A stretch of 64,000 bases of DNA from Bispira polyomma (GCA_965649765.1 OZ287748.1:58156001-58220000); one strand, 5' to 3'. Numbered from the stretch's first letter, positions 17,824 through 63,455 are shown. Notes: generated by a model not told the origin, from the sequence alone. Numbers and translations are program-made.

Positions 17824-18198
17824 TTAAGCAATGGTAATAATGAGATAGAAGCCAAGAAGCCATACAATAAGGCTGCCAGCACACGAGTTGACACCATTGT
17901 TTCTTCTAGTTCGACCTTCATCATCAGTGGTTTGGTAATTGTCAACACCTTTATCAGTTGTGGTCACATCCAGAATACCCTCAACAGGAAATGACATTTC
18001 TTCATGTAAAGGGGTGAAAGAAGCACCAGTATTCAGTGATTCAAACCACCTCTGATAGTGAGCTATTTTAGCATAAGCTGCCAATTTAAAACAGCCAATG
18101 TTATAAATAGGAGAACTAGAACTCCAGCTGACCACACCGGCCTGTGTCCAAGTGTTTGTAGAGCTGCTTCTGCATACCAAAGGACCACCACTGTCTCC
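17824..18198 (-). CDS. Gene A terminal exon: GDSGGPLVC..., linker, RTRR, hydrophobic GPI-like tail
   Basis: TAG|GGAGACAGTGGTGGTCCT; stop TAA at 17824-17826. Confidence 0.92.
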   Translation of the reverse strand, partial: GDSGGPLVCRSSSTNTWTQAGVVSWSSSSPIYNIGCFKLAAYAKIAHYQRWFESLNTGASFTPLHEEMSFPVEGILDVTTTDKGVDNYQTTDDEGRTRRNNGVNSCAGSLIVWLLGFYLIITIA

Positions 18199-21100
18199 CT
18201 AACAGAAAAAAAGGCATAGGTAATAGGTAGTGTGAACATTGGTGGTTGTAAAACATAAACTCCAAAACTAAACTCAATACAATAAAGATTTTTCTCCTTG
18301 ATACTGAGAAGTGCAATATTTCTTAAAACTAAGTAACTAAATAGTTCCATCACATCATGAATAGGTATTATCTGATGATTTGGAACGCTAATGTTATGTT
18401 GGCAGCAAACACAGGCTTTTAGTGTACATAATGCAGATATTTGGAGCTGAACATCTAGAGAAAATAACTACATTGTCTTTGGCATAGTGTGAAATTTATA
18501 ATGACCTTCTTTTAGTATATGTACATAATAATAATGGTAAAACCCCTAGAACATGTCCGGAGAGCATGATTTTGGTCGCATGATAGAAGGTCATAAACTA
18601 AACGAGGCATGTCTGTATAAAACAATAGGAAAACATAAATTTGAGAGAGTGAAAATGAGTTCATAAAATAGAATATTTGAATAATGGATTTTTGGATAAT
18701 TAGATAATACACATTGACAGTCGGAACCCCTGTTAATATTTATATGCAATGTTAATAAAGTCTTGCAAATATCTGAGAAAGGTATTTTACAGTTTATCAA
18801 ATGTTAAGCCATGATATATACAGCTAACATCACTGAATGATGCATGACTTACCTGACAGATATGTGCAAACTCCACATAACCAGCACAAACCATAGTCAC
18901 ATTGTCATAAGGAAGCCTGCCAAAGGTGTTCGCACACCGAGTGTCATTGTACAGTTCAACCTTGAGTTCTTGCAGTTTGGTCGGCATTGAATTGCTGTAT
19001 TTATCTGTGTATATATAACTATAAATATACTGGTCAAAATAAAATAGGACTCGGACATATAAATGTTAAAAATATGTTACTAATTTTAAATATTTAGATA
19101 TATATTTGTATTAACATATCCATTTTCCTTATTCTAAGCTATTGTTGGTTCCAAAATTTTTTTTCCTTAAAACATTACTCAGAAAATCATGCGATGGGCG
19201 AGAAATCTAAATTCACAAGCACACAGATTTACAGTTGTCAAGAAAATGAAAGTTGTCTTTAACTTGCCAATTTATTGAAAAATTACCTCTTAATAGTGGG
19301 TTCTACTCACATTCAGGTTTATCTAATCCGTACAATATTTTTGAATAGTCACAACAGTGTTCCGGATGACTTGCTTTTCCAGGTTTTTCCCACTCTTTCC
19401 TGAGGGCCTGGATCAGCATGGCCACATTGGAACAGATAGATTATAATTCAGAATACTGTTGTGACTATGCTAAAACTGAGTTTATTAACCTGAGTGGGGC
19501 TACAACCCACTATTAACAGGTATTTTTTTCAATAAATTGGCAAGTGAAAGGCTACTTTCGTTTTTGCATGATTATGCCAATGCTTATTGGCATAATCATG
19601 CTTTCATGGAGAAAGGGAATAGTAGAAGAACCTTGGTTACGCATGGTTACAACGTGTCAACAGGGTAATCTCTGAATCTGTGGGGAGTTGTGCTCTTAAA
19701 TTTGGTATATATACACTTTTTAGTCTCTAGTTGGTCCAAAATTAATTTGGTGTGATTGTATGCAGTATAGTAGAAGTTATTCAAGTTTTAAATATTAGGA
19801 TCCTCAGATTTGACTGAAGGTTCCATTACAGCCCATTTCAAATGTTTCAAAAGAGATATATACTATACATGACAAACATTAAGTTTGGAAAGATATTTAA
19901 CATATATATACATACTTTGGTTAATGGGTGGTTGTGGCTGTAAGGAATATAAAATTTGCCACCATCTGAAATTCACAACCTAGAAAATGTTATGTTTTAG
20001 GTAGAATTGTGGCAAATAATTGCTTAAATTAATATTTTTATGATTAATTTGCCTTCCTTACCAGTTATTTTTCGCTAGTTTTTATTTATTTGGCTTAATT
20101 CATAGGGGTGGTGAATTTTAGATACAGGAGCAAATTTTAAATTCCTTACTGTATCAAGCTGAGAAAAAAAATTATAGTGAACCCAATATATTGCATACAG
20201 GTTAACTGGAATATTTTAAAGGATAAAAATTACAGAAGCTATATGTGTCACAATAGGAATAAACCATATGGGGTCAGAAATGGATGGTTTTTGATGGCAG
20301 GAAATATATTGTTTTTGTTTGGTAACAATTATAATTGAACTAACTGTACCAGTGTAGCGCTGAAAAAAGTGTATGGGGATACAAAATATGGCCAGGGGGG
20401 GCTTGCCAAATTTTGTATCCCCTTGCAATATAATGTATCCCCTGCAAACAAATAAATTTATTCTCTGACAATTTATATATGTGTATTATATAAAAAGCTT
20501 AAAACTTATAAGCCATTTTAGCTGAGTGCTATTTTATTTACCTTTTGTGATTTAGATTATTAAAGGATTCAAGTGAGTGTGACAAAAATAATTCATCTAT
20601 GTACACCTTCTGTGATTTGTAAAATGTTTGTGCATAGAACAGTGACAGTTTAGTAAAAAAAAATCTGTAATTGGATTGAACATGGGCTTTGATTAGCAAG
20701 GAATTATTTTAAGTAATAGATTTGTTGGGGGTGCTATAGTGGCTTCTGTACTGATGACCAGTACTTTCTTTTATCTATAGGGATAGTAACTAGTGGTTCA
20801 CTATCTAAAAAAAGGGTGGGGGGGATACAAAATATGGCCAGGGGGGCTTGCCAAATTTTTGTATCCCCTTGCAATATAATGTATCCCCTGGAAACAAATT
20901 TATTCTCTGACTATTTATATATGTGTATTATATTTATAAGCTTAAAACTTAGAAGCCATTTTAGCTGAATGCTATTTTATTTACTTTTTGTGATTTAGAT
21001 TATTAAAGGATTCAAGTGAGTGTGACAAAAATAATTTATCTATGTACACTTTTTGTGATTTGTAAAATATTTGTGCATAGAACAGTGACAGTTTAGTAAA

Positions 21101-24100
21101 AAAAAATCTGTAATTGGATTAAACATGGGCTTTAATTAGCAAGGAATTATTTTAAGTGATAGATTTGTTGGAGGTGCTATAGTGGCTTCTGTACTGATGA
21201 CCAGTACTTTCTTTTATCTATAGGGATAGTAACTAGTGGTTCACTATCTTCGGACTAATTTCGGACGTTTTGCAAGCTATAATAGCTAAAAATGAAAATA
21301 TTTAAATTGGAAAATAAATTATGGCTTGGTCGTTTCTAAAGCTGTCAAAAAACCCGATAATTTTGTAGGTAAACAAACCAACTTTTGTGAGCTACCAAAA
21401 TATATAAAAAATTATTTTTATCAGTTTTTAAAGCAAACTTATGTGAAAAATAAATTATCAAAACATTTTTTATACATATGTTTCAGATTTTACTTTGAAT
21501 TTTGCTTTTGGTTTACCTAACTGGGTACCCACAGTAGGTGGTTCTCGAAATCCATTTTGATCACTGACTAGTGACTGGTTCACTATTTCCAGACTCGTCA
21601 GTAACCTGCTTTGTAGTGGCATTTTCCTCTTGTCTTGACATCTGTGTTCCTGTCCTTGTGAATTTGGATTACTAGCCCATCACATTTTTTGCTTGGGAAT
21701 TCCTTAAATCTATTTTTTGTTTTTAAAGCAACAATAGGTTAAAATAAGAAAAATTGATATGTTAATACAAATACATATCAAAATAATTAAAATTCTTTTG
21801 AAATTATCAACAATAAAATGTGCGAGTCCTATTTCATTTGACCAGTACCAGTGTATATACATGACACTTCTGAGAAATTGCTTAGAATAGTTCCTTAAAT
21901 GTGTCTTTAACATTTATATTTACACGTCTTAAAATGCAATATTTTGACATGAGTTCTAGTCAAAAATATTCACAACATTTTTGTTTGCATTTTGAAGAAA
22001 AGATAATTAGCCATATGTCACGTGTGACTGCCACCTTCAATTAATTTTTGCTGACACAAATAAGTAAAATTTGACCCTATTGCAGTAATTTTGTTGGGAG
22101 CTGTAAAAGTAATGTATTAAAATATTATGTTTAATATCCATTCTCTCAGTGAGGCAATTCAATTTCTATATTATAGATTTTATTTGGATAATGTATGTCT
22201 GTGTAAAACATTTACAAAAATCATAATATTTGGACAGTTAGATTGAGTTCATATAATTAGAAATTCGGAAAATAGGAGTTCCTATGATAGATGACAAGCT
22301 TAGCTGAGCAATTAATAATTTACTTAAGGCACCCCATCCAGTGACATAACATTCCACAAATTCATGAGGCTGAAAAGTCTCATTTTGATTGGCCAGACAA
22401 ACTGGTCTCACATAATCATTGATCTCTACAGGTTCAGCCAGCTGTAACAGTGCCACATCATTGGCTTTGGTATCTGAGTTGTATTCCTGAAAAAATACCT
22501 CCGACACTTTTCAAACATATACTGTACAATATCATTGCTGTGTACAGGCTATAAACCATGAATTAGTATGTAAGAATGAAAATCAAAGTTACACAGGAAG
22601 TATTTTGTGTGTATTTGGTTTTACTTCAGTTCAGTTGTTAATGTATGCATATTACAAATTTACTAAAACTGACAATATGTTGTTTAGTTTGACTAGGTAT
22701 TGGTATATATAGACAGATGCTGAGCTTTCTGGTGAAAAAATATCTATTAAGTGACAGAGGTTATTAGGCAAAAGCCTTGTGCACACAGTATTCCCAGATG
22801 TTCACCTATCCAAGTAGGACATGCGTTCTATTCACTATTTAAAGCTACAGTTTATTTTTAATTCATATTTTTAATCTCTCATTAATTTAAGTAATTAATT
22901 AATGAATTGATAAAATATTGATATAATATGCAGTGGCAAAAAGCCCGCTGCACATGGTATTTCCAGGTGGTCACCCATCCAAATACTAAGCGGCCTTCAG
23001 CAAGACTACTGCTTACTTTCCTACATACATCCAGTGCTGAAATTCAAACCAATGACTACAGAGGTGGGATGTAAGTATTTTACCACTAAACCACCTAAGT
23101 GTGTTAGGATGAAGGATATCATTTTTGAGAACTGAACAGTAAAGAGATATTTGAATAAATTTTTCAACAAATGATACAATTTCTAGTTCTTTACAGTATT
23201 TTATAGTTTGATTGTTATTATCAAACTAATGCTGTCAAGATTAAGTGGATTTATAAATGTATACATCTATTTTTATAGTTATTCTATCAAAAAAATGGAA
23301 CTGTTGAAATATGTATATCACATCTTTTACCTGCATAATAATCTGAGCCAGTCCCCGTTTCTGTAAATTCTCAGAGTGTCCATAGTTGAATGTGGAGCCC
23401 AGTCTTACAGTGTAGACACTGTAATTTAAATCTCTAAATACACAATGGGCAGCTGTCACAACCCACTGACTAGATATGAGAGATCCACCACAGGCCAATG
23501 ATCTGTAAAGGATACAATATCTTTGATCAGCGAATGATATTAAAGGATATTAATTTTATTATTCTAGAATGCTTATGGATCATGTCATATTTGCCTCACT
23601 TACACAGGGGCCGCAGTGGCCTAGTGGTTAGCAAGCTTTGCGCTTCACAATCACTGGTCTCTCGCCTCCGGGCAGCGTGAGTTCGAATCCTGTTGATGCC
23701 TATGTGGGAAAGGTGGAAGTTCCTTACTGTGGGCCGCTGGTTTCAATGCAGAACCTTGATCAACTGTATGCAGTGTTTTCTCCAGCGTTTGCAACTACCC
23801 ATCCCAATATAACGTAAACAGGTACTAGAGTGGATGTTAAATATCCCAATTCAAAGAAAAAAAAATTGCCTCACTTACTTGGACATCGTCTACTCACCAA
23901 CAGCTATTCTACATGTGCCCGCTAAGGATTTATTTGTAGGTATTTGTGACAAAATACAGTGACATAGTATAACTTTGTTTTGACTTCCCTGACTTGTATT
24001 GGGGGTGTTTGCTGTTGGAAGATGTATCGTCTTTCTCATTCCATTATTTTATTGAAGTACTAGAGTTTTCAACATTCACTAAACATTACCATAGCATAAA

Positions 24101-27100: not shown

Positions 27101-30100
27101 TCTGGAAAGACGCCATTTATCAACGAGAGGTTGATAAGTTTTGTGATTGAGGGCAATAAAATGTCAATACATTCTTTGACAAGGAATGTGGGCCACGGAT
27201 CTAGCAAGCAAGATTTTACGGGTGATGCCAGTATAATTTTCCTGACTTCATCAACAGTTACTGTGGAGAAACAGTTGAAGACGGTTGGTGGAGCTGTTGG
27301 TAAAGGGGCATTTGGGGCAGCTAATGTAAAACCGTCACGGATTCTGGTAATTTTATCAGTGAAAAAAGTACTAAAAATGTTTGCCAGTGATTTGCTATTG
27401 GAATTTTCGGGTAGTATAGTCTGTTTTTTGCGGTGGAGGGTGTTATTTAGTTTTTGCCAAAGTTTCTTTGGGTCACCCTCGCTTTGAGATATCATGTTAG
27501 CATAGTAGGCACGTTTTGAGTCATTTATAGTGTTATACCAATAGCACATTACACCCACAAGATTTATCAGACCAAGACCCAGCCTGTGTAAGTATGCCAC
27601 ATACCCATCATATTCCAAGACTACCTGCCAAGGCCAGAATCCTTCTGATGCATCATCACCCTGAGCTATCTTACGTCTCTCCCTGTTGATCACAGTCTCG
27701 CTCCTTGATCCACATGCTACAGAAAGTCAAGAGTAAAGTCCCATTTAACTTCTGAAGTATGTCATTAGAGCAACCTCCCATTTAACTTCTGAAGTATGTC
27801 ATTAGAACTGTAATTACCTTGGCCAAGGATGTTATTTTGGTCTGTGTGCATCGGTTATAGTCTGGCGGTTTTTTGGTCGCCAGGATTACACAAGAATGTA
27901 TTCATTCAATTTACAAGACCAGTTCATAAAATTTGGATTGGATCCCAGTATAAAGGCAGATCCGAGAATTGTATCACTTGTGAAGACACTGAGGCGCCTT
28001 GTAGGGTATGTGCTACACAGTATGCCATTTCAGGTCTAGATGCAAAGCACAATTGCACCATGGCAAGGAAGTACTGGGAATTTGTAAGAGAAAACTGCCC
28101 TCCTTCAATTTTGTGGGGGTGGAAAACAACCCTCCCAGGCAGAACCCATTGAATCATGATGTGTTTGAAGTGTGCTATGAATTAATTTTTCTACTTACTC
28201 GGGCTTTAATAATCAAAGGTACAGTCCTTTCATGTAGCTCCTCACATGTTATTGCAGTTAAAAGTATGTGCTTTTAAAGTGTGCTATGGATTAATTCTTT
28301 CACTTACTCAGGCTTTAATAAACAAAGGTACAGTTGCAATCAACAGTAGACCTGGTTTTGTCATTTGTCAATCAATGTATATAAAAGTGGGCAGCTATGG
28401 TAAGTTGTCATTATCTTTTATTAGAGTAAAGTATTTAAGAGCACATTCACCTCACTAATTAATTATGGAAGAAATAAAAAATACCAGACAAGGATTGAAA
28501 ATTTGTTTTGAGGGCTTTCTTTACACCAAAAAGTCCGTAAAAAAATGTTATTCAGTGGGAGTGCTCTTATAGCCGAAAGTACCTCTGTAAAGTATAGGCT
28601 TATACACTGGATTTAATGTAAGTTCATATTAAATTCTAGATAAATCATAGACCATTGTAGTTTTTTTCAATCTTATGTGGAAAGCAATAAAATGTTTCCC
28701 AAGTATATGAACTGAAGCAAGGAGGGCAGTTTTCCACCCCTACAAAATTAAAGGAGGGCAGTTTTCTAGGAGGACAGTTTTCTAGGAGGGCAATTTTCTA
28801 GGAGGGCAAATTTCCCGGATTCATTTGAAAGTCATTTTAATCTGTATACTTAACTGTGTAACAATATTTCAAAGTTGAGGGATCCAAAATATAGAACTCT
28901 CTAAATAATGATCTAAAATTATGCAGGACATTCAATACTTTTAAATAATATTATAGATTAAAGAATAATATATCACATAGTATCATACAATTAAAAAGAT
29001 CTAAAGTAGTGATATCAGTAAAACTTTCATATTTACTTTTTTTTGTTGTTAATGTGTACATGTCTTTTTTGTATACATTTGTAATTATTTTTTTTTCTTT
29101 CTGTCAAAAGTGGGTTAATAAACCTTGTAAAAGCTATAGCTTATGTTTAGTGGCCTTTCAGTGCACTACAACCCTGTTTTTTATGTTTATATAAGTTTTG
29201 TTACTAAATGTATCTTATGGCACTAAATAAATTATTATGATTATATGGCACACTCAAATGCAACTAATATCGTTTTTCCTGTCACAAAGTATATATATTT
29301 ATGCCTTATTATTTATATAGTTCAATATAATTATCATACACCAGTCTTTATCTATTTATATTTAACTATATAGTCCACTCTATTCCAACATTAACTGAAT
29401 TCAATGGGTTTACCCGTAAAGATATAGATTATACACATTCATCATCATTTATTTTTCCAAGCTAGTAATTTTCTACACCAATAAAGTGCAACAGATTAGG
29501 TGGTATGTTAGAAAAGACTCTATATGTGCTGAATTACTTACTTAGTCTATTACATATTGGTTTTCTTACCATTGTATGTGCACGTCATTGTCAATGCCTC
29601 CCCATTACAAGTATGTCCACTAAAACATATAATACAGCAAGTCATAATACAGCTATCTCCCACTGTGTGTTAACTTGTATATTTGCATATTTTACATGAA
29701 CAAAATAATTAGGTGGGTGTTGTGGAAGATTTGCATTATTTTGCCTACAATATTTAAAATCTTTTAGTCTATCTCTTAAATATATGCCCCAATTCTTTTT
29801 CTGTATTTTTGAACTCTACCTTCATCTTTACCTTGTCACTGGGGACTGACTAGTGTTACTTCAGTTAAACATCAACAAATCATACTGTACCCACACTCAC
29901 ATAGTGTATTAGATGAGTATCATGGAGTTGTTATCTATAAACCTTAATAGTTTTCATATTCCTACTACACCTTTGGTGGGGGCCGCAGTAGCCTAGTGGT
30001 TAGCAAGCATTGCGCTTCACAATCACTGGTCTCTCACTTCTGGGCAGCGTGAGTTCGACTCCCGTCGATTCCTATGTGGGAAAGGTGGTAATTTCTAACT

Positions 30101-33100
30101 GTGGGCCACTGATTTCAGTGCAGAACCTTGATCAACTGTATGCAGTGTTTCCTCCAGCGTTTCCAACTACCCATCCCAATATAACCTAAACAGATACTAG
30201 AGTGGACGTTAAATATCCAAATTCAAATCAAATTCAACTACACCTTTGGTCATGATAATCCTAGTATACCATATGTTCACCATTTTTGTAGCATATCCTT
30301 CCTCTGAATGTTAAAACTTGTTCATCTTGTATATCTTACAACATGGCTCGGTGGACTAAGTTTTTTTTGAGGCATGTATATAGCCCTGAATGTATGAATG
30401 CATTCTCTAAGGCACTTGTTCTTAGGGAGCGATAGTCCTACAGCATAGCATCGGTCGTTATAACAGCCAATGACGTGTTCACATCTTGCTCTAAGATATT
30501 ATCACCCAGTAAGCATAATGTCATTACCTGGAATCCAAACCTGTGACCTTCACTGGACTAACTCCCTAACCGCTTAGTCATGGCAGACAACATCAGATTC
30601 ATAGAAAGTATTGTCAGCATTTTGAGTGTGAAAAGTATAGTACTAGTCGAAAAAATTAAAATACATTGTCTATTGTCCAATACATAACACCAGGATATCA
30701 AATGTAAATGAAAATTTACTTTGATAATATAGATGTTCTAGGCGGTGTGTTCGTGACTTCAGATGATTGGAAAAGTATACTAATGGACTAACACAACTTC
30801 AGTAATGAAACTGTTAAACTGCTTTGGATGTTTAACTTCAGTTGTTTTTATTCACATTTGACCATTTCAAATATATATTCATCGTAAACTGATGCATTCT
30901 AACATCTTTCTAAACCAATTATCTATATATGTTTATATATGGTGTAATTTTGTGTGGTTAATAAACAATTCCATATAGAACAACCGCCTAAAGAAATTCA
31001 TCCCTTATTTTGCATTTTCAAATAACTTACTGAGAAAATACCCCCTTTAAGGTTGAAGTGAAGTTCTGTTGCTGTGGTAACAGAAACCCATTGGTGACAT
31101 ACTGAGACACACTGCTAAGGTCTGTGGTTCCACTGGATACAGCAGTTCTTTAACACATAGATCAGACATACAAGATATACTGTTCATTAAGTGGACCTGT
31201 TCGCTGGATGCAAATAGTATTAAATTAAAATTTGCTATGTTAGAGAAACACACTCGAATTATTTCAACTCTTTACTTAGTCTCTAGTTTTAAATCACAAT
31301 GATAAATACAAGTTTAAATTCTAACTTTGAATTAATTTTTACCTTAAAAGCAAACTAGCTAAAATATCTAAAATTAATTCCTAGTGAAAATTTTTACCTA
31401 TGGCGTACTAAACAGAGTCCTAACCACAGTTTGTATCAAACTTCTAAACAGACTAAACAGTATCCAATCACATTAGATCAGTAATATACAATACTGACAG
31501 AACTGATGTGGTACAAATTGCAGACTTATTCTTTACAAATCTGTCATACTTTCTCTACAAATTCACAATAAAGTGAACACTCACCCATATCTCATGACTG
31601 TACAGGTGTGGTCATTCTATCCCTCATTCCAGTCATTACACAATAAAGTGAACACTCACCTGTATACCATGACTGTACAGGTATGATTATTCCATCCCTC
31701 ATTCCAGTCAGTACACAATAAATTAAACACTCACCCGTATCCCATGACTGTACAGGTATGATTATTCCATCCCTGGTTCCAGTCAGTACACAATAAATTA
31801 AACACTCACCCGTATCCCATGACTGTACAGGTATGATTATTCCATCCCTGGTTCCAGTCGGTACACAATATATTAAACACTCACCCGTATCCCATGACTG
31901 TACAGGTATGATTATTCCATCCCTCATTCCAGTCAGTACTACACACTGGGGTCTGAACTCCTTGATACATCACAAGAAGGGCTTTTGTTGAGTGATCAAG
32001 ACTCACTACAATTACATTGGTATATAATCATGTGACGTGTGTTGCTAAAAATAGCAGACAAAGGAATACACAGGCCTGGGGTGATGAATAGTCCATTGAG
32101 ACAAGCCAAACTTACCTTATCGGTAGTATTTCATAGAAATGTAATTTTTAAATTATCATTTAATATAGATGCTTTTCTATTGTATTTAGTCACTGAGACA
32201 TGTCTGATTAAAGTTGTGTCTTGACTTATTCAATATTTGACACATGCAAGTATTTCTCTAGCCACATATTAATGGACTTAACAAAGGATTAGTTACTCGC
32301 AAAAGGTTTTTTAAAAAATTAAACATGTAATATAATGCTCAATTTGTCAGTGCCATTCATGCTGACCTCCATTATCTGATTTCTTCAAAAAGTATAATAT
32401 AATACTCTGTAACAATAGAATCTTTATTATTCGACCATGTTAGAAGAGCAAGAATTATTATTCGACCACGTTGGAAGAGCAAGAATTATTTTTCTTAAAT
32501 TAGAAGGGGTAATTCAGTATCAAGAAATAGGAAAACAAAAAATTTGAGTAAAAATTAGTTCCTCAAACCATGCATTTGTACAATTATTATAGAAGTTTGG
32601 ATACTAGGTATTCTGCTGTAGTTGGTCTACTTACCACAATACCATTCATCTGAGCCATCCTTGCAGTCTCTCTCTCCATCACACCTGACAGATAAACTGA
32701 CGCAACTCTCGTAATCTAAACAGGTAAACTGCTGGACAGTACAAACTGGACCACCTGAAGCAGATGCATGGTAATTGTATAGACATAATAAAACATTGTT
32801 TCAAGGGTTATCAAATACAGTCAATTTTGTTATTTTATAGAGAATGTACCCAATATTCAAAACAATTTACTGGATTCTACACAACTAAAGGTTTTTTTCA
32901 TTGGCTATTGTGGAAGCACTTTTTATCAATGGTATGGTTGCTTTGATAATTTTTGAGGGCCTGAAGGGGTTTACAAATCATTGACGACACGACACTACAC
33001 CACAGGGGACGACACGCCACTGCATGACAGTAATATACACACCAAACACGACACCACACTAAATAATACATATAAAAGTGTGAATGTACCTCCTCTGTGC

Positions 33101-50665: not shown

Positions 50666-50944
50666 CTACATCTGCTTCACACACCAGTACACTACCAGTA
50701 GATACAAAAGAAGCCTCTCTGGTCCAGTAGAGTGTAATGTCTTGTATCCACTGGCTTCAGTGCCGTACAGCGCAGTATTCAGAGCCTCTGCCACCCAGTC
50801 TGTGTGGGCGCTCATCTCAGTAAACACACTGCGACCTTGACAGGCTTCATCACTGTAGCGGTCAGTCGCCACCCAGCTGGACACACCAGCCAAGGTCCAC
50901 CTCCAGTTCTCATCTCTACACACCAGAGGGCCACCCATATCTCC
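50666..50944 (-). CDS. Gene B terminal exon, Ser195->Met (GDMGGPLVC), hydrophobic tail [12 protein letters not shown]
   Basis: CAG|GGAGATATGGGTGGCCCT; TAG at 50666-50668. Confidence 0.92.
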   Translation of the reverse strand, partial: GDMGGPLVCRDENWRWTLAGVSSWVATDRYSDEACQGRSVFTEMSAHTDWVAEALNTALYGTEASGYKTLHSTGPERLLLYLLVVYWCVKQM

Positions 50945-53900
50945 CTGTACATACAATACAATAGAATGATAGGTATATAAGGGGCAAGAATCTTTTAAAT
51001 CAGCGCCGCTGAAGGCCTCTATTAACATGAATGATTACATGTACATACACAGGGAGTAAGCCTTTATTTGAGTTGTGTTTCAATTTTAGCCTAAGATTCT
51101 TTACAGAATACAGGCTCTGGTACACAAAGAGAATGACTAAGTGTAAGGTTGAAATTTGGTACATTTATTGAGACAGAATTAACACAAGAAATCAGTTGAA
51201 TGTTACTGTGTCACCTGGTAAGTTTGAGAGAAAAATATGTATGAACGCAGAGAAGTATAAAACAAGCATCCAGTGGTACCATCATTTATATTTTAAGGAA
51301 ATGGAACAGATTTTAGCCAGGTGGAGCTAGGATACACTAGGATATTTTATTTCAAAGCATTTCAAAAAATTTCGCTCAAGTTCCTTTCACTTACTTAAAT
51401 AAATGTTGCATTTTCAGGAACTTTGACATTGACATTTGAAAATAAAATAAAGTGTTGTGCAACTGTAACCTCTCCATTTTTGATGGCTGAGAAGTTTACA
51501 TCAGTATACAAATGTAAATGAAATCCACCAAGCAGGCTTTGTGTTACAGTCTGGAAGTAATCAAACATGTCTAACTTTTAACTCATTAGAATACTTTTAC
51601 TGTTAAAAGTTTAAGGTCACCATATAACAGGGTTCCTCCTTAGGTCCATATACATCTGTGTACCAAATATAAATGAAATCCATAAAGCTGTTTTCAAGTT
51701 AGAATCATGGTGACGACAGATGACGACGGACAAAGTAATCCCTATGTTAAATACATTTTTTATGCATTTATCTTGTTATAGTGGAATAAAAGTGTTCAAA
51801 ATAGTACATTTTGCAAGTTGAAAGTTGCCTTATTGATATTTTGTATTGTGGTCCCATTTAGTCTATCCTTTCTAAAACATGTTTGCCGAAAACATGTTTG
51901 CGCGCGGAATAAATGTCACATGACTATACTTACATCACACAAAGACACCAAACCATTGCCGTATCCAGCACACATCATATTATCCCTTTGATAACTGCCC
52001 CTGAAGTCAAAGTTGTCACTTTCACAATCTGAGTCCTCAATCAAAGTCATCTTAGCCTCTTGTAGATACCGAGACCGGTGTTCTCTCCATAGACCTGTCA
52101 CAGTAAAACATAAAGTACGTATTGATCAAAGCTTTGGGTCATAATACTTCAAATTTACACACAGACAGAAGAATCAATTTGTATGTAGAATGCAAAATGA
52201 TAAAACCAAACAAATTACTTTTAGAAGAAATCAAAATGGATGTCAAAATAACCCTTTCAGCATTTTGAGACATACTACAATAAAATCAAATACTAGAACA
52301 GTACTCAGTTTGATGCATTCCTCTGCCAAGGTGCCACTGTGCCAAAATATTTCTTGATCTGCCCTTTTTCTTAAAACTGCTCCAAAATTTAACAGATTCT
52401 TTCTTGGTTCATGTTGCATCCCTCCACCATTGAGTTTCCTGAAAATTGGTTTAATATGTGTTTTGTATAATTTTTGTGATGAACAAACTAACCAATGGAC
52501 ACAGGTCAAAACATAAACTCCTTGGTATAGGTGATATTAGATACGTTAAACCAGGGACAATATATTCATACTTACAAGTCTGATATTATTAGCCTGATTG
52601 TGTCATACAGTTTTCAGATCAGCCATCTAAACTTCATAACAGAACACTAAACTATAAGTGAGCTTGTTTACCTTTTGACCCCCAGCCTGTCACATAACAC
52701 TCCCTCTTTTCAAACATGTTCTCGCTGTCACCAGGCAGACACAGCTGCTTCACAAAGTTATTAGTTGTAAAAGGTAAGGAGAGCCTCAGTATGGCTAGGT
52801 CATTCTTCTTGGTAGCTGCATCATAATCCTACAAAGACAAATCAAACAAGAACATTCAAAATCAGCATCAACCTCATGTTACTGTTTTATCCCTGTGACA
52901 TATCAAACATATCGACATGGCATACAGGATATCGTAATCATTTCCATACTGATCCTGTTGTTGTACTTGTTCTCCTGGACAGATTGAACACATTTTGTAC
53001 GTTTTTGTCAGGATGGTGTTTTTACTGATACAGCAGACTTAGATGTATTACGTTGCAGTAACATGACAAACAATAGAAATTCTATTATCTGAACATGTTA
53101 GGAGAGCAAGGTTTTGTTTCTATAAATAGAAGGATATGAAAATAGAAGTAGGAATTTAGTATACAACAATAAGAAAATGTAAAATTGGGGGAGTGTGAAA
53201 ATGTGCTCATAAAATTGAGCACTCAGATATTAAGAGCCATTCAGATAATGGAGGTTGTATGTTGTACTATATATTTTTAATGCACTTTATTGATGCAAGG
53301 CATCTTCTAAATCGCAACAACAAAATTAATTCAACCAATCATGTGTCCTAAAACATAGCCTGGGTCATCATCAGTAGGCAATGACAGGTTCACATTTTTT
53401 TTTTAGGTTGTTCACATCATGCCCAATAATTTTATCCCACCAATGAACCTAGTGGCATCAGCAGGAATCGAACGAGGGATCTTCTGATCACCCTACACAC
53501 TAGGCCACGGGAGACCACATCATCAATGATGCAATGCAGCCTGGTCACAATGTCTACTTCTCTCTTATTGGACAGACGTTGACCACAAATATCTGCCCAC
53601 TTACAGTCATGTGACTAAATTCTACACTCTAATGATAATGACTGATACATAGTTCTGGAAGAATGGCATTCAGAGAAGACTATAAATCTGTGTTAAGCTA
53701 CTAAAAAAAAAAGTATTTAGTCTAATAGTTGAATCCACCATTGTACGTCATATGTTTTATACCTCATGTACAACTATGGTCTGTACTGATGCCGTCTGTA
53801 GGTAGTCTGTGGGGGCCATCACTTGGATAGTTCCAGCACGTACTGTCCAGTCTCCAGAGTCTGTATCATGCACACACTGCGCCGCAGTCACTACAAACTC

Positions 53901-56900
53901 CTCAGTGATCAGGGTGCCACCACACACATATTGACTATAAGCCAAAAAAAAATAGATATAAATAATGTAAGTTCTGTAATAAACACCTTTGGCCTTTTGT
54001 GGAATTTTTTTAAAAAGGGGCTATTATTCAAGAAAACAATATTGGCATGTAGAGGCGTCACATAATGGTAAATACATAGTAATATATATATGAAATAATT
54101 TAACTACCCAAAGAATATCAGGATGTTTAGGTGTAGGCCAGCACATTTATATGCTTTCAGTCTGAGTTTGAGCAGAATTTCTTACGTCTTAATTTTGTCT
54201 AAGATTTAACACCTTGTATGAATCCCACCATAGAGAGTAAGATTTGAGTAGGTGCATACTCATTGTGTAGAAGGCCGACATGCCAGGGCCAATGTCCATC
54301 CACTGAGGTCAGGGCTCCCACTATCTTAGCTGGGCTCAACACACTCTGGGTCCTCATGGGGGATGTCCCACAGGCTAAAATAAAGAAAAATTGCCTATTA
54401 ATTACAATCCAGTTTAGTTCAAATAATAGCTTAAGATATCAGAGAAGTGACCTATACCTGCCACATCAGCAGAATACCAAAGACACCAAGCAGCAGGTGC
54501 AGTGCCAAGTTTTAGGACAAGCAAGTACTGCCATGCATTAGGTAGCAATGATATAGTTGCGACCACCCAACAGCAAGTCTACTGCCCGCTCCTAATGCTA
54601 TTGCCAACAAGATCAGGGCCTGGGTCGTATGGCACCTAGTCACCTAGCAATGAAGGTTCCCAACTGCAGAGCTTTAATCCCTGGTAGCCCACACCAGGGA
54701 GTAGTTGCAAGGTGGGAACCAGCACCACACGGATCCGAGCCTGGATCAGTTAGCAATGACCTTAGAAGCCAAGTATGCAACATAATCAGCTGCCAGCAAG
54801 TCTGCTGCCCACATAAAGTCAATAACCAGATGAAATAACAAGAATTCTAATTCATTATTTATTTTATTACACACAAACATTTGGGCATATCTCACTTAAA
54901 ACAGGTTAGCGTGTTAAACAAGAGATATGAGGGGAACAAATAAACCCCAAACCGAATAATTTAATTATTAATTATATTGATTTAATTATATTTAATGAAT
55001 TTTATTATCATTAAAAAGTTATATTTTTTCCATAATATTGTATTATGGAATTTTAATTTGCTTTGTTCATTTAAAGCATTACATTACAATCAATAAACCA
55101 TGGGAAAGTCTGAAAAACATGGCAAATGTGCTTAGAAACACGCACTAAATCAATGACATATGATGACAGAGAAAAAATAACCGTCTTAGTTTTGTTATAG
55201 ATCATGGCACTGGGGGATAGTGGGATGGGGGGATTTACTGTTGTCTATTCATCGACAAAAGCCTACGAACCACGATTTACTGATGAATGTCCACCTGAAT
55301 AAGACTAAGCCTTAAAGAAAGTTTAGTGTATTCGGTGTGTTTTTTTCAAAAACTAATGGACTGCAAATCGAAAAAAAGGAGACAAGGGTTTGATACTGTA
55401 ACATATTAAGTGCTCACAAATATAACAAAATTATATGAACACTTCAGTATAGTTCAATATGATAGCAGTTTTGTATATTAAGTTTCTGACATGTAAAGTG
55501 ACAAAAATCCTAAACATCAACAAAACTAACATTAGCATCTTCAACTAACTGATACTAAAAAACACGAAACATGTCGTCCGTCATAAAAATAGGAAAAGAT
55601 AACTTTGTACTCACTATCATCAGAACAGGTCAAGGTCACTAACTGTTCTGAACGGCAGTTGCCACTAAAAAAAACCAGAAACATATTTCCAAAATGGCAC
55701 TTAATTCAATTTAACAGAGTTGAAAATACCATAATTTCTGTAATAAATGCCCCCAGGCCTTTACGTTTACCAAAAGGAGGGGTTCTATTAATAAAGAACA
55801 CCATTTTGATATGTGACAGTGTAACATCTTGTTAAAAAATCATAGTAATATGTAGAAAACAGTTGAACTATCTACAGCAGATCTTGATTCCTAATCATAG
55901 ATAAATGCAATTTACATGCTGACCTGCATTATCACTGAATTATGTAATAAAAATCAGTATTTTATCCTTTTTTAACATTGCCTGAAGAAGAAATGTAAAG
56001 CTGACACAAAATGTAGTTGTGGTGTACCTGCTTAAGTATTGGCACAAAGTCTTGTGGATCTAAAAATCTCTTTAAAAAGGGAGGGGGTATAATTAGAGAG
56101 GTGGAGGGGGCGTTATTACAGGAAATACAGTATATTACATTTCCTTGTTTGGAGGCTTGCAGATATATTGGCCCCATTTTCTGGTGAAATATAATCACCA
56201 GACAATCAAAACAAAATCTGTCACACATATTTAGATTTATATCAATGTTCGTGTTCTGCCAAGCTGATTCTAATAACTTTAGTATATTTTACAGAGAATA
56301 TAATCTTAGTGCTGAAAAAAAACCCAGTGAATAAATAAAACCTATACAGCGTCATATTGAGAAATGTAAACATTACCTAAAATTTTACGAAATGAAAAAA
56401 CCCCTAAATCTCTATAAATTATCTGTATGTGTAGTGTAGTAGAGTAAAAGGAACCATCATACAAACATACATTTCCAGAACATCCAATAAGCTGGTCTTG
56501 AATGTATCATAGTTGGGCACTAAGACACCTGCAGAAAGCTGAAGGACAAGGCTCCCGTCAATGTAGCCATCTGATAAAGCAGATCTGAAAAATATACAGC
56601 TTAAAATGCTGACCCATGATTCAAATTAAGCCCTTACGAAATACTTCATATGCTCACTGACTGCTAGTACCCTAGTAGTTGACAAAACTTTCGTAAAATA
56701 TGCCCTGTTGGCCGAAAATCTCACACAGTTTCCGAGATAACTGACGTTTTCGAAAAAATTCAAGATGGCCGTCAAAATCGGAGCATTTTTGAAAAGTTGA
56801 CAAAACTTTTGTAAAGTATGCCCTGTTAGCCGAAAATCTCACACAGTTTCCAAGATATTTTTAAGTTTTTAATTGTTATATCTCAGTAACGATCGCAAAT

Positions 56901-59900
56901 TTATGGATGGGGTAAAAAATAAATGAAAAATGAGGCTTTTCTACAAAACTTATCTAAATTAGGCCAGAGTTCAAATCCAAGAATTTGAAATAAAAGTTAC
57001 ACTCCTGGTTAAAATAACTGCCAAAATTAATTTTGAACCGGAAAATATTAAAGGAATTATTCAAGAAAGATCAAGCAGCGGCATCAGAGGCGGGCGAGGA
57101 AACTAAGGACGCCTAATTATGTAAAACCCAACTGAACTCACCCTTGTCCGATAATGCCACAGGTCTTATCATTCCAGGAACTGTCCCACCTGTCAGCACA
57201 GACAGGCAGTGTGGAGCCTTGATGGGTCACCAGGAGAACACTATGGCCTTCTACCCTCAATGTGCTGACTGAAAGCAGGCAAAAAAAGCTAGAACATTAA
57301 TCTACATTGTATGTGGATTGAAAGGGTGGCAGGCTTTCTTCAAGTCCTTTTCTCTCAAGCATTATATGAGGACAGTTTTGACTTTGTAAATAGATACTGG
57401 TGCTTTGTATTCCACAGAGATGACTAACCCAATTCACGTAGTGGAATCATAAGATTTGTGAGCCAGTGTAGCTTCGTAGGTCTCTGTTTTTGATGGAAAG
57501 CTGGGGCTCTAGAAACAAATTTTCTATTCCTATTTTTCAACTTAGGTGTAATTTTTACACATATACGCATATTTTTGACAAAACAAGTCCCCATTTTAAC
57601 ATCTGCTAGTGTGGCACGTCACAGTTCTCATCATATTTCCCTTACACAAACCTGTGCTTGTGACAACAGCTGGTACTTAATTAAAGAAGAATACCAACTT
57701 ATAAATACTGACAGATGGCTCAGACTGAACCAAAGCACCAGTGCAATCCAGAAAAGTAATCTCAAAAACAATTGTGAAAACTGTGAAAACTATTTCTCAA
57801 AGATTAACCCAAACAGATGTCATAGAATGACAATACACATCTACAACAAGATTTGTACTGTCAAGGTCAGAAGTTATAGGTCAAATTGTATTGCACATAT
57901 GCCCATGGATCAGTCTGATTGTACACAAAAGACAGGACAAATATAAACATCGGTAAAGCTACAAAGAGTTATGGATTACATTTCTTATCCCCGGTTTACC
58001 TTATATACACTCACAATACATTACAAGGCTCTAAAATCATTAGTACAGCAAATATAAAGAAAAATTATGACAATTTACTCTTTTAGGGTCTCTTTTAAAA
58101 GTGACCTTAAACTGGATCTGTATACTGTTCAGAACCTCAACAGTCAATCTGTGGATCCCTACAGAGATATTCTAGCAAGATGAATCGTATTACAAGTAAT
58201 TGTGTTTGAGATATGACATAAAATCTTGAAATTAATCTTTGTGCCCCTATTTTGACAATAAGCCTGGTGTCACAAGTCAAATGCTCGACACTAGCTTACT
58301 ATATAATAACAATACATTAGAAATATCTAAATTCCTCACTCTAAAACTAAAAATTTGGGCAAAATGCCAAGATTCTCTCATAAACAAAAATATAAATATA
58401 TATATGCTAAGGCATATGTATAACTACATAAAATTGTGTTTGGCATTTCAAGGATTAAATTACACTTCGTATTTAAAAGATTAAATTAGTCTCTATATAT
58501 ACATAAGAGACTCACTGCAGCCTAGCTCATCTGATTCATCCGTACAGTCTACAGAGTTGTCACATTGCTGCCACGAGCTGTAGCAACTGGAATGGTCATT
58601 ACATTCCATATCATCGCAGTCCAAGCCACCTAGGGATATAAAGTAAAACCTCTAATATCTGAAAATTCGATTTGATGAACTTGTGGCTACTCTTCCAAAG
58701 CAAAGTTATGTTTTGCTATTGTTTTACATAGCAATGCCCCTTATATTTTATTAACCTTTTGTTATCCTAACAAAATCTAATTGAGGTCAGTATGCTTTGG
58801 ATAATGGAGGTCAGACCTGGGGCGAATACTTTGAAAAGAACACAAATACTTATACTTTCAAATTTTATTAATACAAATCTGAAAAATAAAAAGGGAAAAT
58901 TACTTAAAAGAGCTCTACTTAAAGGGGTTTGCTGTACTTAGAATTGGTTTAGTATAGTTTTATTGGTGAATTACTTTTATAAGCTCTTGTCTCCTGAATC
59001 AGTATGGATCAGGCCTCGAATTAAAAGTTTGTTAATTAGTGTGTTTTTTGTTGTAGAATGATGATTATCATAATGGCCCAAAAATGTTTGCAAAAGTATG
59101 AAATAGTAAATTTGTTATAGCGCACTTATAGAACACAGTGTCCTTTCAAATGCGCTTCCTCTTGGGCTGCCACTATGGGCGCCGAGGTGCTTGAGGATGA
59201 CCATTTATCAACGTCCCCAAGGATCTTTAATCTGCCACTAGAGATATTACTCAGTAACAGAGGACCACCATTTTAAGTGGTCATCCAAGCCACTAGGTAA
59301 ACTTGTATTCACATCTTGCCTAAGGATGTTATCTCACCAAATGAAACGAGGGGCCGGTACCGGGAATAGAACTGGCACCCAAAAATGTTTCTAACTCATG
59401 ATTACTTCGTGAATAGCAGAGATGGGTCTGTAGTAAGTCATGAATACTAATGATTCCATATGAAAAAAACAACAAAATACTACTGATTTTTCATAAAAAG
59501 AACAATTTTAAAGATTACCTACAAATGCCCTCATGATTGCCTTACAATCAAGTACAGGTTCAGAGATCTTATAGCTTAATATGTAACCTTTTTTCTTAAT
59601 CATACTGTTATATTAAATCACAGATTTGATGACAAAAAACAACACTTACAAACCATATAAACTTAATTAGAGGTAGCTTTAATATTAATGAAGTATTGTT
59701 AAAAATTTTGTCACAATTTTCCATATTATTTTATGCAATGGATTTATTTACATATTTATTTTAATATTAGATATTATAACTTCTCTTGATTGTTCAATTT
59801 AAATAGCATTTTCAGATTGTACACATATTTTGATTTTACTATATTGTATTTATATAAGATGTAATTAAAATTATTACACATCACTGCAATTTGAAACTAA

Positions 59901-62900
59901 CCGGCTACATTGCTTTACAATATGGTTTACACTTGATAAAAATTATTTATCTAAAATGATAAACCAAACTTACAAAACCATTCTTCTTCACCAGAGGAAC
60001 AATCTCTAACTCCATCACAAACCCAGTCATTTGGAATGGTTACTCCATTGGAACAGAGGTATTTATCTGAGTCATTATAGCCTTAAATACAGAACACACA
60101 TACTTAGATCACAGTGCATGTTATTTTTAAATCTACACATTTACTAAAAAAAAAACTTTTTTGAACCAAATAGCATTGAAGGCATGTCACTCACATTTCA
60201 ATAAAACATGTAGGCTTCATAACTGACTGGTTGGAAGAGTTGAAACCTTACTCTTTCATCTCAGTAACATAGTTTTATTTTTGATACTTGAGTTTACATG
60301 TTTAACAATGGATTTCAAGGTATATCCTGTGTGGTATATATCCTAATCAAGGTCCAGGCGGGTAGTCCAACAACACAGCCTTGGTACACAGCATCATCAG
60401 TAGGTGTGTCCACATCCTGCCCAACGATGTTATTCCCCCAATGACCGTTGTGGCTTGTTTTCTGAGAACCAAAATTGGAATCTTCTAATCACCAGACAAT
60501 GGAAGACCAAAGCATTTGAAAACTCAAAAGATAGAACTTGAAAGGTATATGGTCCTGTAAAAAGTTGTGATATTGTTTCTGTACAAAAAACTACCAAGCA
60601 CCTGGCATACCTAAAGGGACGTTAATTAAATAAATATGTTACCTTGATAATACAGCACCCCTCCCCTCTAATGTTAAACCAATTCAGTTGAAGAAAATTG
60701 TGTATAAGTATGCCTTTTATTCATCTGTTGATATCTCTCCAGTTCTTGTTACATTTTAAAAGAGATTCAAGATGGACTTGTGATGTTATTCTGGTAGCAT
60801 TAAGGTAAAATCTGCCCAATGTTGGGGGTTTCAGAGGAACTTACCACACACATATCCACTTTCATCACTGTAATCTGGGCAGTCCATAACACCATCACAG
60901 ACATAAGAATCAGGATAGCAGGTCTTGTCATAGTCACACAGGAAGCCACCAGTACAGTCTGAGGAGGTGAACAAGTTTTAAGTATAAACTCAACAACTTA
61001 GGATGGTACTGTGTTCAAAAATAAGGGACATTCAGCACATGTATTTACCTTTATTTAGTATTTAGCAGTTTGTTAATTTTCTTAAATTCCCAAATACAGT
61101 CACTTGCCAAGATGAGTAACTCTTATTCCTATACAAGAGAGAGGCTTGAGGACGACCATTTATCAACATTCACAAGGCTTTTTAGCCTGGTACTAGGAAA
61201 AGTACACAATGACAGAGGACTGCTATTTTATATGGTCATCAGAATCACATATTTGCTTGTACCTGATCGACTGAGGTATTTCAAAGCATCGAACCCAGGT
61301 CCTTTGTGAGGGTGTTTTACCGCTAGGCAACTAATTAAACAATTTTAAAGCAGATTTTTAGCAACAAAAACAGTAAAACAGTCAGCTGATAAACCAAGTT
61401 ACATCTGAAAGAGTTAGATGACACTATACTGCTTTAGAATTGTTCATGCTTTGAACTATTGGATAAAAACATTGCAACAGTGTCATTGAAGCCATGCACA
61501 GTCTCATCATCTATTACATATGTATAAATATCAATATGCACGAATGTACTACTTTACTGTTATTCTACAAATTGACTAATTATACAACAGAGATTGTGGA
61601 ATTTTGTCCCAAAATCATCCAAATGGTCTTTACAGACAGGTGGTAATAATAAAGCTGAATAAAACATTTCCGGGATCGACTTTTAAAAGGAATTCATTAT
61701 TATAGCCAAAGTGACCTTATTATGAAATGAATATCTCATGTAAATTAAGATATATAATGCATATACATAAATATACTGTAATTGCTGTAATAAAAGCCAC
61801 AAGGCATTGTTTTCGCCAAAAGAGGGACACTAGTAAAGAAAACAATGTGAGGGTGTAACAAAATCTGTTGTTGTGCTTCAGAAGATGCGTCGCATCAAAA
61901 AGGTGCAATTTAAATCCACAATACAGTGTTAGTGTAGTACCTGTTGAAAAATTGGCATTTAGTAATCTAAAATTCTCTTAAAGAGGGAGATTGTTATGAG
62001 AGAAGAGCTAATAGTATATTAAATAACTATGACATTTTATATTATATAGACTTACTGCATGAGATTTCATCCTCATAATATGTACAGTCATTGTAGTTAT
62101 CACACAGGTATTCCATGGGGATCACATAGCCATCAAAGCAAGTGAAAGAATCTGCTCATATTAAAAACAGTTATTAAAACAAAATTACACAGGCGTTGTA
62201 ACAATATTACTATTATGGAAACCCTAAAACAGTGGCAATGATTTACAAAGTAATTAAAATCTGGTGTTCCAAGCCAAAAAGCCTTGCCTTACTTGCTCTC
62301 ATAAATGCTCCTGAGGGCTTTTCATCTTGGCTTAATCCACATTCACAGTGTTATGTCAGCTCTATTGTGGTCAAATGGCAACCTACTATCTTCAAAATTG
62401 CAAAAAGTTACAAAGAAAACAATCTGTCTTCTTGAAATGGGCCTTGACCCCCAAAAATAGACATTTTACCTTTCAAAACCCCAATAGGAAAATAATAATA
62501 TAGGCCCCGTCCTGAGGCAAGGCTTTTTATTCCCCTTGTAATTTTATGCAAATTATTCTTTCCTGTTTTAAAGCCTGCCTTCTATATCAGGAAATTCATC
62601 TATGTGTATGTCTATATATGTATCTGTATGATCTTTCTTATATGTAACAACACTGCAATAGTAAAGTTGGATATAATTAAATCTAATATAAATGTGAAGA
62701 TGCCATAGCAGGAATTTTAGACATAAAAATATGTGATTAGATATTCAACTGTAGTCTATAGGACCGAATAATCTTGTTAATTTTGCTATCTGTTATACTT
62801 GTGTAAAAATCCCATATATCACCCATGGTGGTGCCGAGTTATACTTGATTTGGTGCAGAGTTGGTAAAATTATGGTGACAAGTTGGTATTAGTGCTAATC

Positions 62901-63455
62901 AGCTGATTGATACCTAGATGGTATTGTTGATGACTTCTAAATAACATTTTTTGAACTTAATTAAACATATGTATCAACTAGAAGGACAAAAAGCCACGAA
63001 AACAAGGTATTTAATTGAAAAAATGGATTTCAATTTGAAACTTTTTAAAACACGGCCGTTCTCGGTGAACACCTTTTCAATCTAAATTGAAAATATGTAT
63101 TAACTAGAAGGGCATTCAATATGGTGTATGCAGCCAACAAGGTGCCACAGTGCCACAAAAGTGAACAAATCTTGGATCTGCCCCTCTAACTAGATCCAAT
63201 TTAACATGTAATGGAATCTTCCATGCCCCAACACTCCACCGAATTTCAGTTAAATAAGTCTTTGGAGTAATCCTACGGATAAACAAATTAATCTCAAAAA
63301 TATAAAAAGACACCGGGCGGAAGTATTAAGTATATTAATTCCGTACATACCACAGTCCAACTCGTCTTCTCCAACAGAACAGTCAGTGTAATTGTCACAC
63401 ACCCAGTAGTCAGGGATAACGTCACCATCGTAGCATGTAAACCTGTCACTTCCAC
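50666..63455 (-). CDS. Gene B (5'-incomplete): at least 5 LDLa + SRCR + catalytically inactive serine protease homolog (H57Q, S195M) + hydrophobic tail
   Basis: Exons (minus strand): 63351-63455, 62056-62151, 60845-60958, 59974-60081 (or -60066), 58516-58629, 57142-57268, 56471-56584, 55615-55664, 54260-54374, 53763-53934, 52672-52828, 51934-52094, 50666-50944. Phases are compatible, there are no stops, and the protease cysteines are conserved. Confidence 0.88.
51934..52094 (-). CDS. Gene B exon ([14 protein letters not shown]...[15 protein letters not shown])
   Basis: 161 nt, phase 1-0. Confidence 0.9.
52291..52535 (-). mobile_element. Helentron-associated short element; relatives at about 36121-36500 and 63102-63328
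   Basis: ACTAGAA...CTCTGCCAAGG...CCTTGG.ATAGGT sub-terminal inverted motif and shared body. Confidence 0.55.
52672..52828 (-). CDS. Gene B Asp102 exon (NDLAILRL...QLCLP...CYVTGWG)
   Basis: 157 nt, phase 0-1. Confidence 0.92.
53276..53516 (-). mobile_element. tRNA-SINE with a LINE-derived 3' tail matching the L2 end at 39015-39060
   Basis: GTGGCCTAGTG / GTTCGATTCC head; tail TTAGAAGATGCCCTTGCATCAATAAAGTGCA. Confidence 0.72.
53763..53934 (-). CDS. Gene B exon with His57->Gln ([17 protein letters not shown])
   Basis: 172 nt, identical size and phase to the gene A His exon. Confidence 0.92.
54260..54374 (-). CDS. Gene B activation exon ([16 protein letters not shown]|[21 protein letters not shown])
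   Basis: K|IVGA, WPW motif, phase 1-2. Confidence 0.9.
55615..55664 (-). CDS. Gene B SRCR exon 3 ([16 protein letters not shown])
   Basis: 50 nt, C.S...V.L.C motif. Confidence 0.83.
56471..56584 (-). CDS. Gene B SRCR exon 2 ([37 protein letters not shown])
   Basis: 114 nt, phase 2-2, open frame. Confidence 0.72.
57142..57268 (-). CDS. Gene B SRCR exon 1 ([42 protein letters not shown])
   Basis: 127 nt, phase 1-2, SRCR PVC..W motif. Confidence 0.87.
58516..58629 (-). CDS. Gene B LDLa exon ([37 protein letters not shown])
   Basis: 114 nt, phase 1-1. Confidence 0.9.
59108..59378 (-). mobile_element. tRNA-SINE family 3 copy
   Basis: AGTGGCAGATTAAAGATCCTT...GCCCATAGTGGC shared with the 4928 copy; AAGCGC...GCGCTATAACAAAT tail. 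Confidence 0.8.
59974..60081 (-). CDS. Gene B LDLa exon, 4-Cys ([31 protein letters not shown]+C)
   Basis: Last Cys split T|GT; two in-frame acceptors possible (exon starting at 60081 or 60066). Confidence 0.82.
60845..60958 (-). CDS. Gene B LDLa exon ([37 protein letters not shown])
   Basis: 114 nt, phase 1-1. Confidence 0.9.
62056..62151 (-). CDS. Gene B LDLa exon, 4-Cys ([31 protein letters not shown])
   Basis: 96 nt, phase 1-1; GAGCAG tandem acceptor. Confidence 0.87.
63351..63455 (-). CDS. Gene B LDLa exon, 4-Cys ([34 protein letters not shown])
   Basis: 105 nt, phase 1-1, AG/GT. Confidence 0.87.

Follow-up and report, generated by a model that had tools for sequence, protein, structure and literature searches.

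A conserved non-catalytic member of a tandem cluster of LDLa-SRCR serine protease genes in Bispira polyomma

We analysed a stretch of 64,000 nucleotides from Bispira polyomma (GCA_965649765.1, OZ287748.1:58156001-58220000; G000:C1:58156001-58220000 in our labelling), hereafter the window, which lies within a 1.04-Gb assembly and is AT-rich (~34% G+C). Two head-to-tail genes on its minus strand, A and B, share one module order, in which several LDLa modules are followed by SRCR-like and S1 serine protease domains and a hydrophobic C-terminus. In our preferred reading, to which we assign a probability of roughly 0.72, A and B belong to a large tandem cluster of hepsin/TMPRSS-like mosaic S1 protease genes, and B is a conserved non-catalytic protein, probably a binder tethered to the cell surface. 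Exon sets were obtained by six-frame reading, and splice sites and phases were then taken from the DNA. Pfam, PDB and similarity searches were run one exon at a time. Positions are counted from the first letter of the window and are collected in Table 1.

The catalytic triad separates the two genes. Gene A reads TAAHC (His57), NDVALL (Asp102) and GDSGGP (Ser195), and from this intact triad its product is probably an active enzyme. Gene B reads TAAQC (Gln57) and GDMGGP (Met195), having lost both His57 and Ser195. It keeps Asp102, Asp194, the K/IVGA activation site and an open frame. Its structural cysteines are all present (Cys42-58, 122, 136-201, 168-182 and 191-220), as is the cysteine that would tie the stem to the protease domain. 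The last exon carries SWV in place of SWG, with loss of Gly216, and Asp192. These readings agree with a first-pass annotation of the window, which had described a full triad in A, and in B the loss of both residues with retention of the rest. Membership in family S1A is seen exon by exon for both genes: Pfam Trypsin (PF00089) scored at or above its cut-off on three of five protease exons in A and on three of five in B, with one more in B just under it, the activation exons being too short to score. Since Gln57 and Met195 break the triad, B is a homologue and not an active S1A member. Its S1 fold, replaced triad residues and intact structural cysteines are those of a pseudoprotease.

The dead codons are not assembly errors, since contigs from three public DNA runs (two samples) cover all protease exons of B with zero differences, and the two samples agree at every one. 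Variants among these contigs fall in high-copy intronic repeats, outside the protease exons.

A second species provided an orthologue of B. A full-library search with the last exon of B returned an 81-residue exon-level open reading frame (ORF; P0003), 52% identical and covering the tail. In that species (ENA ERZ22147071, contig ctg30881l, 959 kb; locus L015), six consecutive open exons are 47-68% identical to those of B. Exon sizes are 50/115/172/157/164 against 50/115/172/157/161 in B, the last exon is also present, AG/GT splice sites coincide in position and phases are identical. Within its own genome B lacks close paralogues, its best matches there being 36-51% identical, and we therefore take L015 to be the orthologue. 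All three catalytic positions differ between the two proteins: position 57 is Gln in B and Gly in the orthologue (TAAGC), position 102 is Asp and Asn (NNIAM), and position 195 is Met and Phe (GDFGGP). This is the pattern expected once catalysis ceases to matter. Common to both are the K/IVG site, Asp194, every cysteine and SSWVA. The orthologue tail ends ...KLVFCVIVVLTWCLGSM*, and both tails consist of 12-14 hydrophobic residues followed by three residues with a final Met (KQM, GSM) and a stop. The last exon of B gave nothing when used alone in a word search, and when aligned with the orthologue it returned P0003 only; the last exon of A returned P0031 and one small fragment, with no third species. 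The remaining matches of the representative search were unspecific predictions of multi-protease proteins carrying SEA, CUB or lectin modules, and were uninformative for this family.

Codon differences between B and its orthologue were counted by hand in two gapless exon alignments, those of the His and Asp exons (109 codons). Of these codons 37 are identical, 24 differ by synonymous changes only and 48 are replaced. A silent change is seen at 24 of the 61 conserved residues (~40%), which indicates that the two species are well separated. Despite this divergence the orthologue has acquired no stop or frameshift and has lost no splice site. By codon position, the differences number 32 (first), 26 (second) and 55 (third), and this third-position excess indicates purifying selection, in relaxed form, over two species and two exons. 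A rough ratio of nonsynonymous to synonymous rates (dN/dS) for the Asp exon is ~0.5, an order of magnitude only. Thus B is under purifying selection, though relaxed; it is a kept gene, and its loss of catalysis is old. The first-pass annotation had proposed a maintained dead paralogue, to be set against the case of B orthologues with an intact triad, and had named dN/dS as a check. In the second species the orthologue is likewise dead, its frame is open and it shares the exon structure of B, and the codon counts point the same way. On its sequence, B is a maintained pseudoprotease, and neither a decaying copy nor a polymorphism.

The order of the two genes is conserved as well. An A-like last exon (P0031) lies on the same contig and strand, ~48 kb downstream of the B orthologue. 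It belongs to an orthologue of A with an Asp exon 77% identical to that of A, TAAHC, Asp102, GDSGGP and a hydrophobic tail, and whose His, SRCR and LDLa exons were found further along ctg30881l. This orthologue keeps AGHV-FAHTC (an AGxV-FAHxC motif with His189), and also the non-canonical G/GCAAGT donor after the third LDLa exon. The synteny of an active and a dead gene, suggested as a further check by the first-pass annotation, is therefore seen in both species, and the order B then A, dead and live, predates their split.

We next consider the family to which the two genes belong. Both carry an LDLa and SRCR-like stem directly ahead of the S1 domain, the arrangement of hepsin and the TMPRSS proteins, with SRCR_2 (the TMPRSS/hepsin type) as the sole SRCR family matched, below its gathering score in both genes (E = 5e-4 and 6e-3). 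PDB matches of the A and B exons were TMPRSS2, hepsin and tryptases; the best solved relative of the B Asp exon is TMPRSS2 (E = 1e-9), followed by TMPRSS11D and hepsin. No clip domain was matched on any scanned exon, Pfam giving LDLa, SRCR_2 and Trypsin only. From module order, SRCR type and solved relatives, A and B most likely belong with the hepsin/TMPRSS-like mosaic proteases. The shared intron phases, the 50-nt SRCR exon and the 172-nt His exon noted in the first-pass annotation are all present, as is the T/GT split, in front of the last LDLa exon, of a Cys codon, which encodes the sixth Cys of the penultimate LDLa module (A 33409/32754, B 59974/58629). Gene B does not begin at 63455, where that annotation had placed its start; three further LDLa exons lie past the window end (locus L013). 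B thus carries at least eight LDLa modules, with an Ldl_recept_a match on eight of the eight exons. In A six of the seven LDLa exons have this match, and the first (43165-43046) has none and was recognised by BLAST similarity alone. Four-cysteine LDLa modules are the majority (six of eight in B). These modules lack both cysteine 1 and cysteine 3, disulfide partners in the standard module, and the Pfam alignment starts at model position 5-7.

A genome search with the last exon of B found nine related last exons on C1 at 57.96-58.34 Mb (~390 kb), and more elsewhere. The cluster of related genes has at least nine members, and among the related last exons found all but that of B read GDSGGP. An active-type gene, C (GDSGGP, Asp102), lies immediately upstream of B, with its last exon ~5 kb past the window end. 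The protease exons of A and B are 34-45% identical. The His exon of B and the stretch after its protease domain (EALNTALYG, compared with ESLNTGASF in A) resemble the tail-bearing A-like genes L008-L010, and its exon 4 and last-exon core resemble tail-less genes such as C, and also L002/L004/L005. Since parts of B resemble different cluster members, B cannot be called the sister of A. Of the paralogue pair proposed in the first-pass annotation, paralogy and adjacency stand; a sister relationship does not, given the low identity, the size of the cluster and the presence of C upstream of B. One other copy suggests what real decay looks like in this cluster, in contrast to B: L007 (G000:C1:58007372-58007560; L007 ~1500-1690, minus strand) is ~95% identical to L004/L005 but has lost 1 bp from the G-run of GDSGGP and carries a stop downstream. 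L007 may be a true pseudogene of recent origin, or the deletion may be an assembly error in a homopolymer.

The C-termini of the two proteins suggest how they may be held at the membrane. After GDSGGP, the last exon of A encodes a Thr/Asp-rich stalk, then a hydrophobic C-terminus and a stop. The hydrophobic end measures 18-19 residues in A and 16-19 across A and its relatives, small residues precede it and the protein ends there. The same tail type occurs in L008-L010 and in the orthologue P0031. The tail of B is a shorter version of this shape (12-14 hydrophobic residues, with the stop shortly after), and it is conserved in its orthologue. Small residues, a spacer and a terminal hydrophobic stretch fit the shape of a glycosylphosphatidylinositol (GPI) signal, which is conserved in the orthologues and in L008-L010. 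GPI anchoring would be the most economical reading of these C-termini. The other end of the proteins may carry a signal peptide or a type II anchor, or may have neither of them. The signal peptide named in the first-pass annotation was not located for A or B in scans for hydrophobic starts and in ORF lists. These gave one weak candidate, at 47124 (MTFNSVITSIYLFLLTILLV...), with a weak donor and without a good phase-compatible one. A signal-peptide-like ORF (MGSVLVLLCHATFKC...) 35 nt upstream of the outermost LDLa exon of B was rejected, being out of phase and needing a 38-nt intron.

Several points weigh against a conserved, surface-tethered B. Its amino-acid divergence from the orthologue is ~44% over two exons, constraint is relaxed relative to A (77% identity in the Asp exon), and the case for selection and orthology draws on one other species. 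The middle part of the SRCR-like domain was not located, the region giving no similarity between A and B and no Pfam match. The run search for the stretch returned three DNA-type runs and no RNA run, so that the splice model and any expression of B are putative, and no transcript-derived protein was among the word-search matches to the last exons of A and B. The same scans and ORF lists yielded no convincing first exon for A (43182-50660) or B (window-equivalent 66818-68781). Finally, the GPI reading comes from sequence shape, with a stretch of only 12-14 residues in B.

These points bear differently on the alternatives. A non-functional pseudogene that has not yet acquired stops would explain the lost catalytic residues, the altered oxyanion/specificity region (SWV, Asp192), the high amino-acid divergence and the lack of RNA evidence for B. 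We consider it extremely unlikely: with ~40% of conserved codons silently changed, a neutral sequence would hold many stops and indels, but across six exons in two species the frame, the splice sites, near-identical lengths and every cysteine are kept. The apparently decayed copy of the cluster, L007, is already frameshifted at ~95% identity. That B is functional and not C-terminally anchored is unlikely, though far less so. It might be a secreted LDLa-rich binder, with the tail buried or cleaved, or might carry an N-terminal type II anchor like its closest solved relatives, the N-terminally anchored TMPRSS proteins; the short hydrophobic stretch, the polar residues after it (KQM, GSM) and the N-terminal exon, which was not located, are consistent with this. 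Against it, the hydrophobic end and the position of the stop are conserved although the tails differ at roughly half of their residues, and several paralogues have clearer GPI-like ends at the C-terminus.

The first-pass annotation had proposed a dedicated enzyme and pseudo-enzyme pair, in which B regulates or decoys A at the surface, for instance within an A-B heterodimer. In its favor, A and B are head-to-tail neighbours on one strand, the order B then A is conserved in the second species, both C-termini are hydrophobic, and the stretches after the protease domain are alike (ESLNTGASF and EALNTALYG). Tandem order is, however, conserved by default over such distances, which makes adjacency weak evidence. 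A and B are only 34-45% identical, exon 4 and the last-exon core of B are at least as close to the tail-less C and L002/L004/L005, and the cluster has at least nine genes with the active-type C directly upstream of B. A dedicated pair is thus very unlikely, and the idea that B regulates or decoys A is pure conjecture.

We therefore favor a conserved, non-catalytic B that is probably tethered to the surface, on the ground that the cleavage site, the switch and the stem disulfide are kept while the triad is lost. In this model both products are built from an LDLa array followed by SRCR-like and S1 domains and a C-terminal tail, and B would be displayed on the cell surface, probably via a GPI anchor. 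B would still be activatable through zymogen-type cleavage at K/IVGA, after which Asp194 could form a salt bridge with the new N-terminus, so that the conformational switch would be retained. It would then act by binding and not by cutting, as a scaffold, cofactor or trap. Its partners may be substrates, inhibitors or the active proteases that neighbouring cluster genes encode, and its LDLa array may supply calcium-dependent ligand binding. A bolder version holds that these genes represent an annelid class of tethered mosaic S1 proteins that are anchored C-terminally, the reverse of the vertebrate type II transmembrane serine proteases, with B an ancient non-catalytic receptor or cofactor, switched by cleavage, that controls neighboring proteases. 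We regard this version as quite unlikely.

The arrangement was compared with known systems. Like the vertebrate hepsin/TMPRSS type II proteases, A and B run from LDLa to an SRCR_2-type domain to S1, with a Cys before the activation site able to tie the stem to the protease. Unlike them, A and B have seven or eight LDLa modules, mostly of the four-cysteine kind in 99-nt exons, instead of one; they have a hydrophobic C-terminal tail after S1, and an N-terminal signal anchor was not found; and B is catalytically dead. Within the vertebrate TMPRSS/hepsin subfamily, the third domain of polyserase-1 is the only dead member known to us. GPI-anchored S1 proteases are established, namely prostasin (PRSS8) and testisin (PRSS21) (PMC3431340, PMC9114714). 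A and B resemble these in having S1 followed by a hydrophobic C-terminus, a candidate anchor signal, and, by prediction, a cell-surface location. They differ in that prostasin and testisin lack an LDLa/SRCR stem and have an intact triad. Prostasin can act without catalytic activity in the matriptase pathway, which makes it the nearest precedent for a tethered S1 cofactor. The prostasin-matriptase cascade has been described (PMC3431340).

Serine protease homologues (SPHs) have an S1 fold with a replaced triad, are under selection and act by binding, and many need activation cleavage (PMC1761132, PMC4338370, PMC9114714). B shares the S1 fold, the replaced triad and maintenance by selection with the arthropod clip-SPHs (masquerade, scarface), HGF/MSP and PRSS37, and appears to be analogous to the arthropod SPHs, HGF/MSP and PRSS37 (PMC1761132, PMC9114714). 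Clip, kringle and PAN domains were not seen in the exons of A and B. A honey-bee survey listed LDLa and SRCR modules for active proteases, not for homologues (PMC1761132). A full-text literature search found no LDLa-SRCR pseudoprotease, no C-terminally anchored LDLa-SRCR protease and no annelid member of the family.

Table 1. Exons of genes A and B. Positions refer to the window unless given in L013.
Gene	Feature	Position	Strand	Length (nt)	Details
A	LDLa array, seven exons, all phase 1-1	32635..43165	-		Pfam Ldl_recept_a, BLAST
A	LDLa exons	43165-43046, 38481-38383, 36673-36551, 35459-35361, 34173-34051, 33516-33409, 32754-32635	-
A	Four-cysteine LDLa exons	38481-38383, 35459-35361	-	99-105
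A	First SRCR-like exon	31885..32005	-	121	SRCR_2 E = 5e-4, under Pfam threshold
A	Last SRCR-like exon	29570..29619	-	50
A	Activation-site exon	27605..27716	-	112	CGS...RRK, IAQG after cleavage point
A	His57 exon	23331..23502	-	172	TAAHC
A	Asp102 exon	22324..22486	-	163	NDVALL
A	Protease exon 4	18853..19004	-	152	His at position 189
A	Last exon	17824..18198	-		GDSGGP; coding 18198-17827, stop 17824-17826; Pfam Trypsin E = 4.9e-5
B	LDLa exons beyond base 64000, three	L013 1253-1435, 2620-2802, 3626-3817
B	LDLa exons in window, five	58516..63455 (63455-63351, 62154-62056, 60958-60845, 60081-59974, 58629-58516)	-
B	Four-cysteine LDLa exons	63455-63351, 62154-62056	-	99-105
B	Four-cysteine LDLa exon	60081-59974	-	108
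B	Four-cysteine LDLa exons	L013, all three
B	First SRCR-like exon	57142..57268	-	127	SRCR_2 E = 6e-3, under Pfam threshold
B	Last SRCR-like exon	55615..55664	-	50
B	Activation-site exon	54260..54374	-	115	CGTSP...SPAK, IVGA after cleavage point
B	'His57' exon	53763..53934	-	172	TAAQC (His to Gln)
B	Asp102 exon	52672..52828	-	157	NDLAIL
B	Protease exon 4	51934..52094	-	161
B	Last exon	50666..50944	-		GDMGGP; coding 50944-50669, then stop

Gene A has further features of its own. Its specificity pocket is odd, with His189 (FAHIC-QGDSGGP; 18853-19004 and 18100-18198, minus strand) and SWS replacing SWG at 214-216, and His189 is kept in the orthologue (FAHTC). Because of this pocket, A would have a substrate preference unlike that of an ordinary trypsin or chymotrypsin. 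The intron after the third LDLa exon (36551/36550, minus strand) has a GC donor, TGTG/GCAAGTA. The same donor is found in the second-species orthologue (L018 ~3992), making this a conserved GC-AG intron. A tandem array at 31595-31884 (minus strand) consists of three to four copies of a unit that comprises the splice donor of the first SRCR exon and the 3' end of that exon.

Mobile elements occupy introns of the same gene. A retrotransposon without long terminal repeats lies at 25603-27726 (minus strand), in the orientation of the gene and starting directly past the activation exon. Its reverse transcriptase (RT) frame is uninterrupted (666 residues scanned, RVT_1 E = 4e-35), and the open frame continues in frame from the activation exon of A for 708 codons with no stop. 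A transcript reading through the 27605 donor would encode a protease-RT chimera, and the in-frame run is probably due to chance. A second, broken copy of this element, with RVT_1 pieces in three frames, lies at 39236-42255 (minus strand) in the intron between LDLa exons 1 and 2. In gene B, the introns contain very high-copy repeats at 51170-51705 and 53046-53581, where summed contig depth is thousands of times that of single-copy sequence and many variant joints occur. Elsewhere in the window, a perfect tandem repeat with a 27-nt unit is found at 13428-13670 (minus strand), reading HYASTSGLV about eight times in one frame, with an RT fragment near it at 14060-14368. The interval 8001-10000 shows a strong local GC skew (+0.63 over 2 kb).

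Catalytically dead homologues of S1 proteases are well known, as are S1 proteases with a GPI anchor, and the gene family described here is lineage-specific, which limits the wider significance of the finding. If B is expressed and surface-bound, it would be a natural tethered S1 protein, activatable by cleavage and non-cutting, on a long LDLa stalk. Together with its orthologue, whose three catalytic residues have all been replaced by others, B would offer a clean system for studying the S1 fold in a purely binding role. If the proposed anchoring is true, the LDLa-SRCR-protease module of the TMPRSS-type enzymes could be mounted on the membrane from the opposite end.

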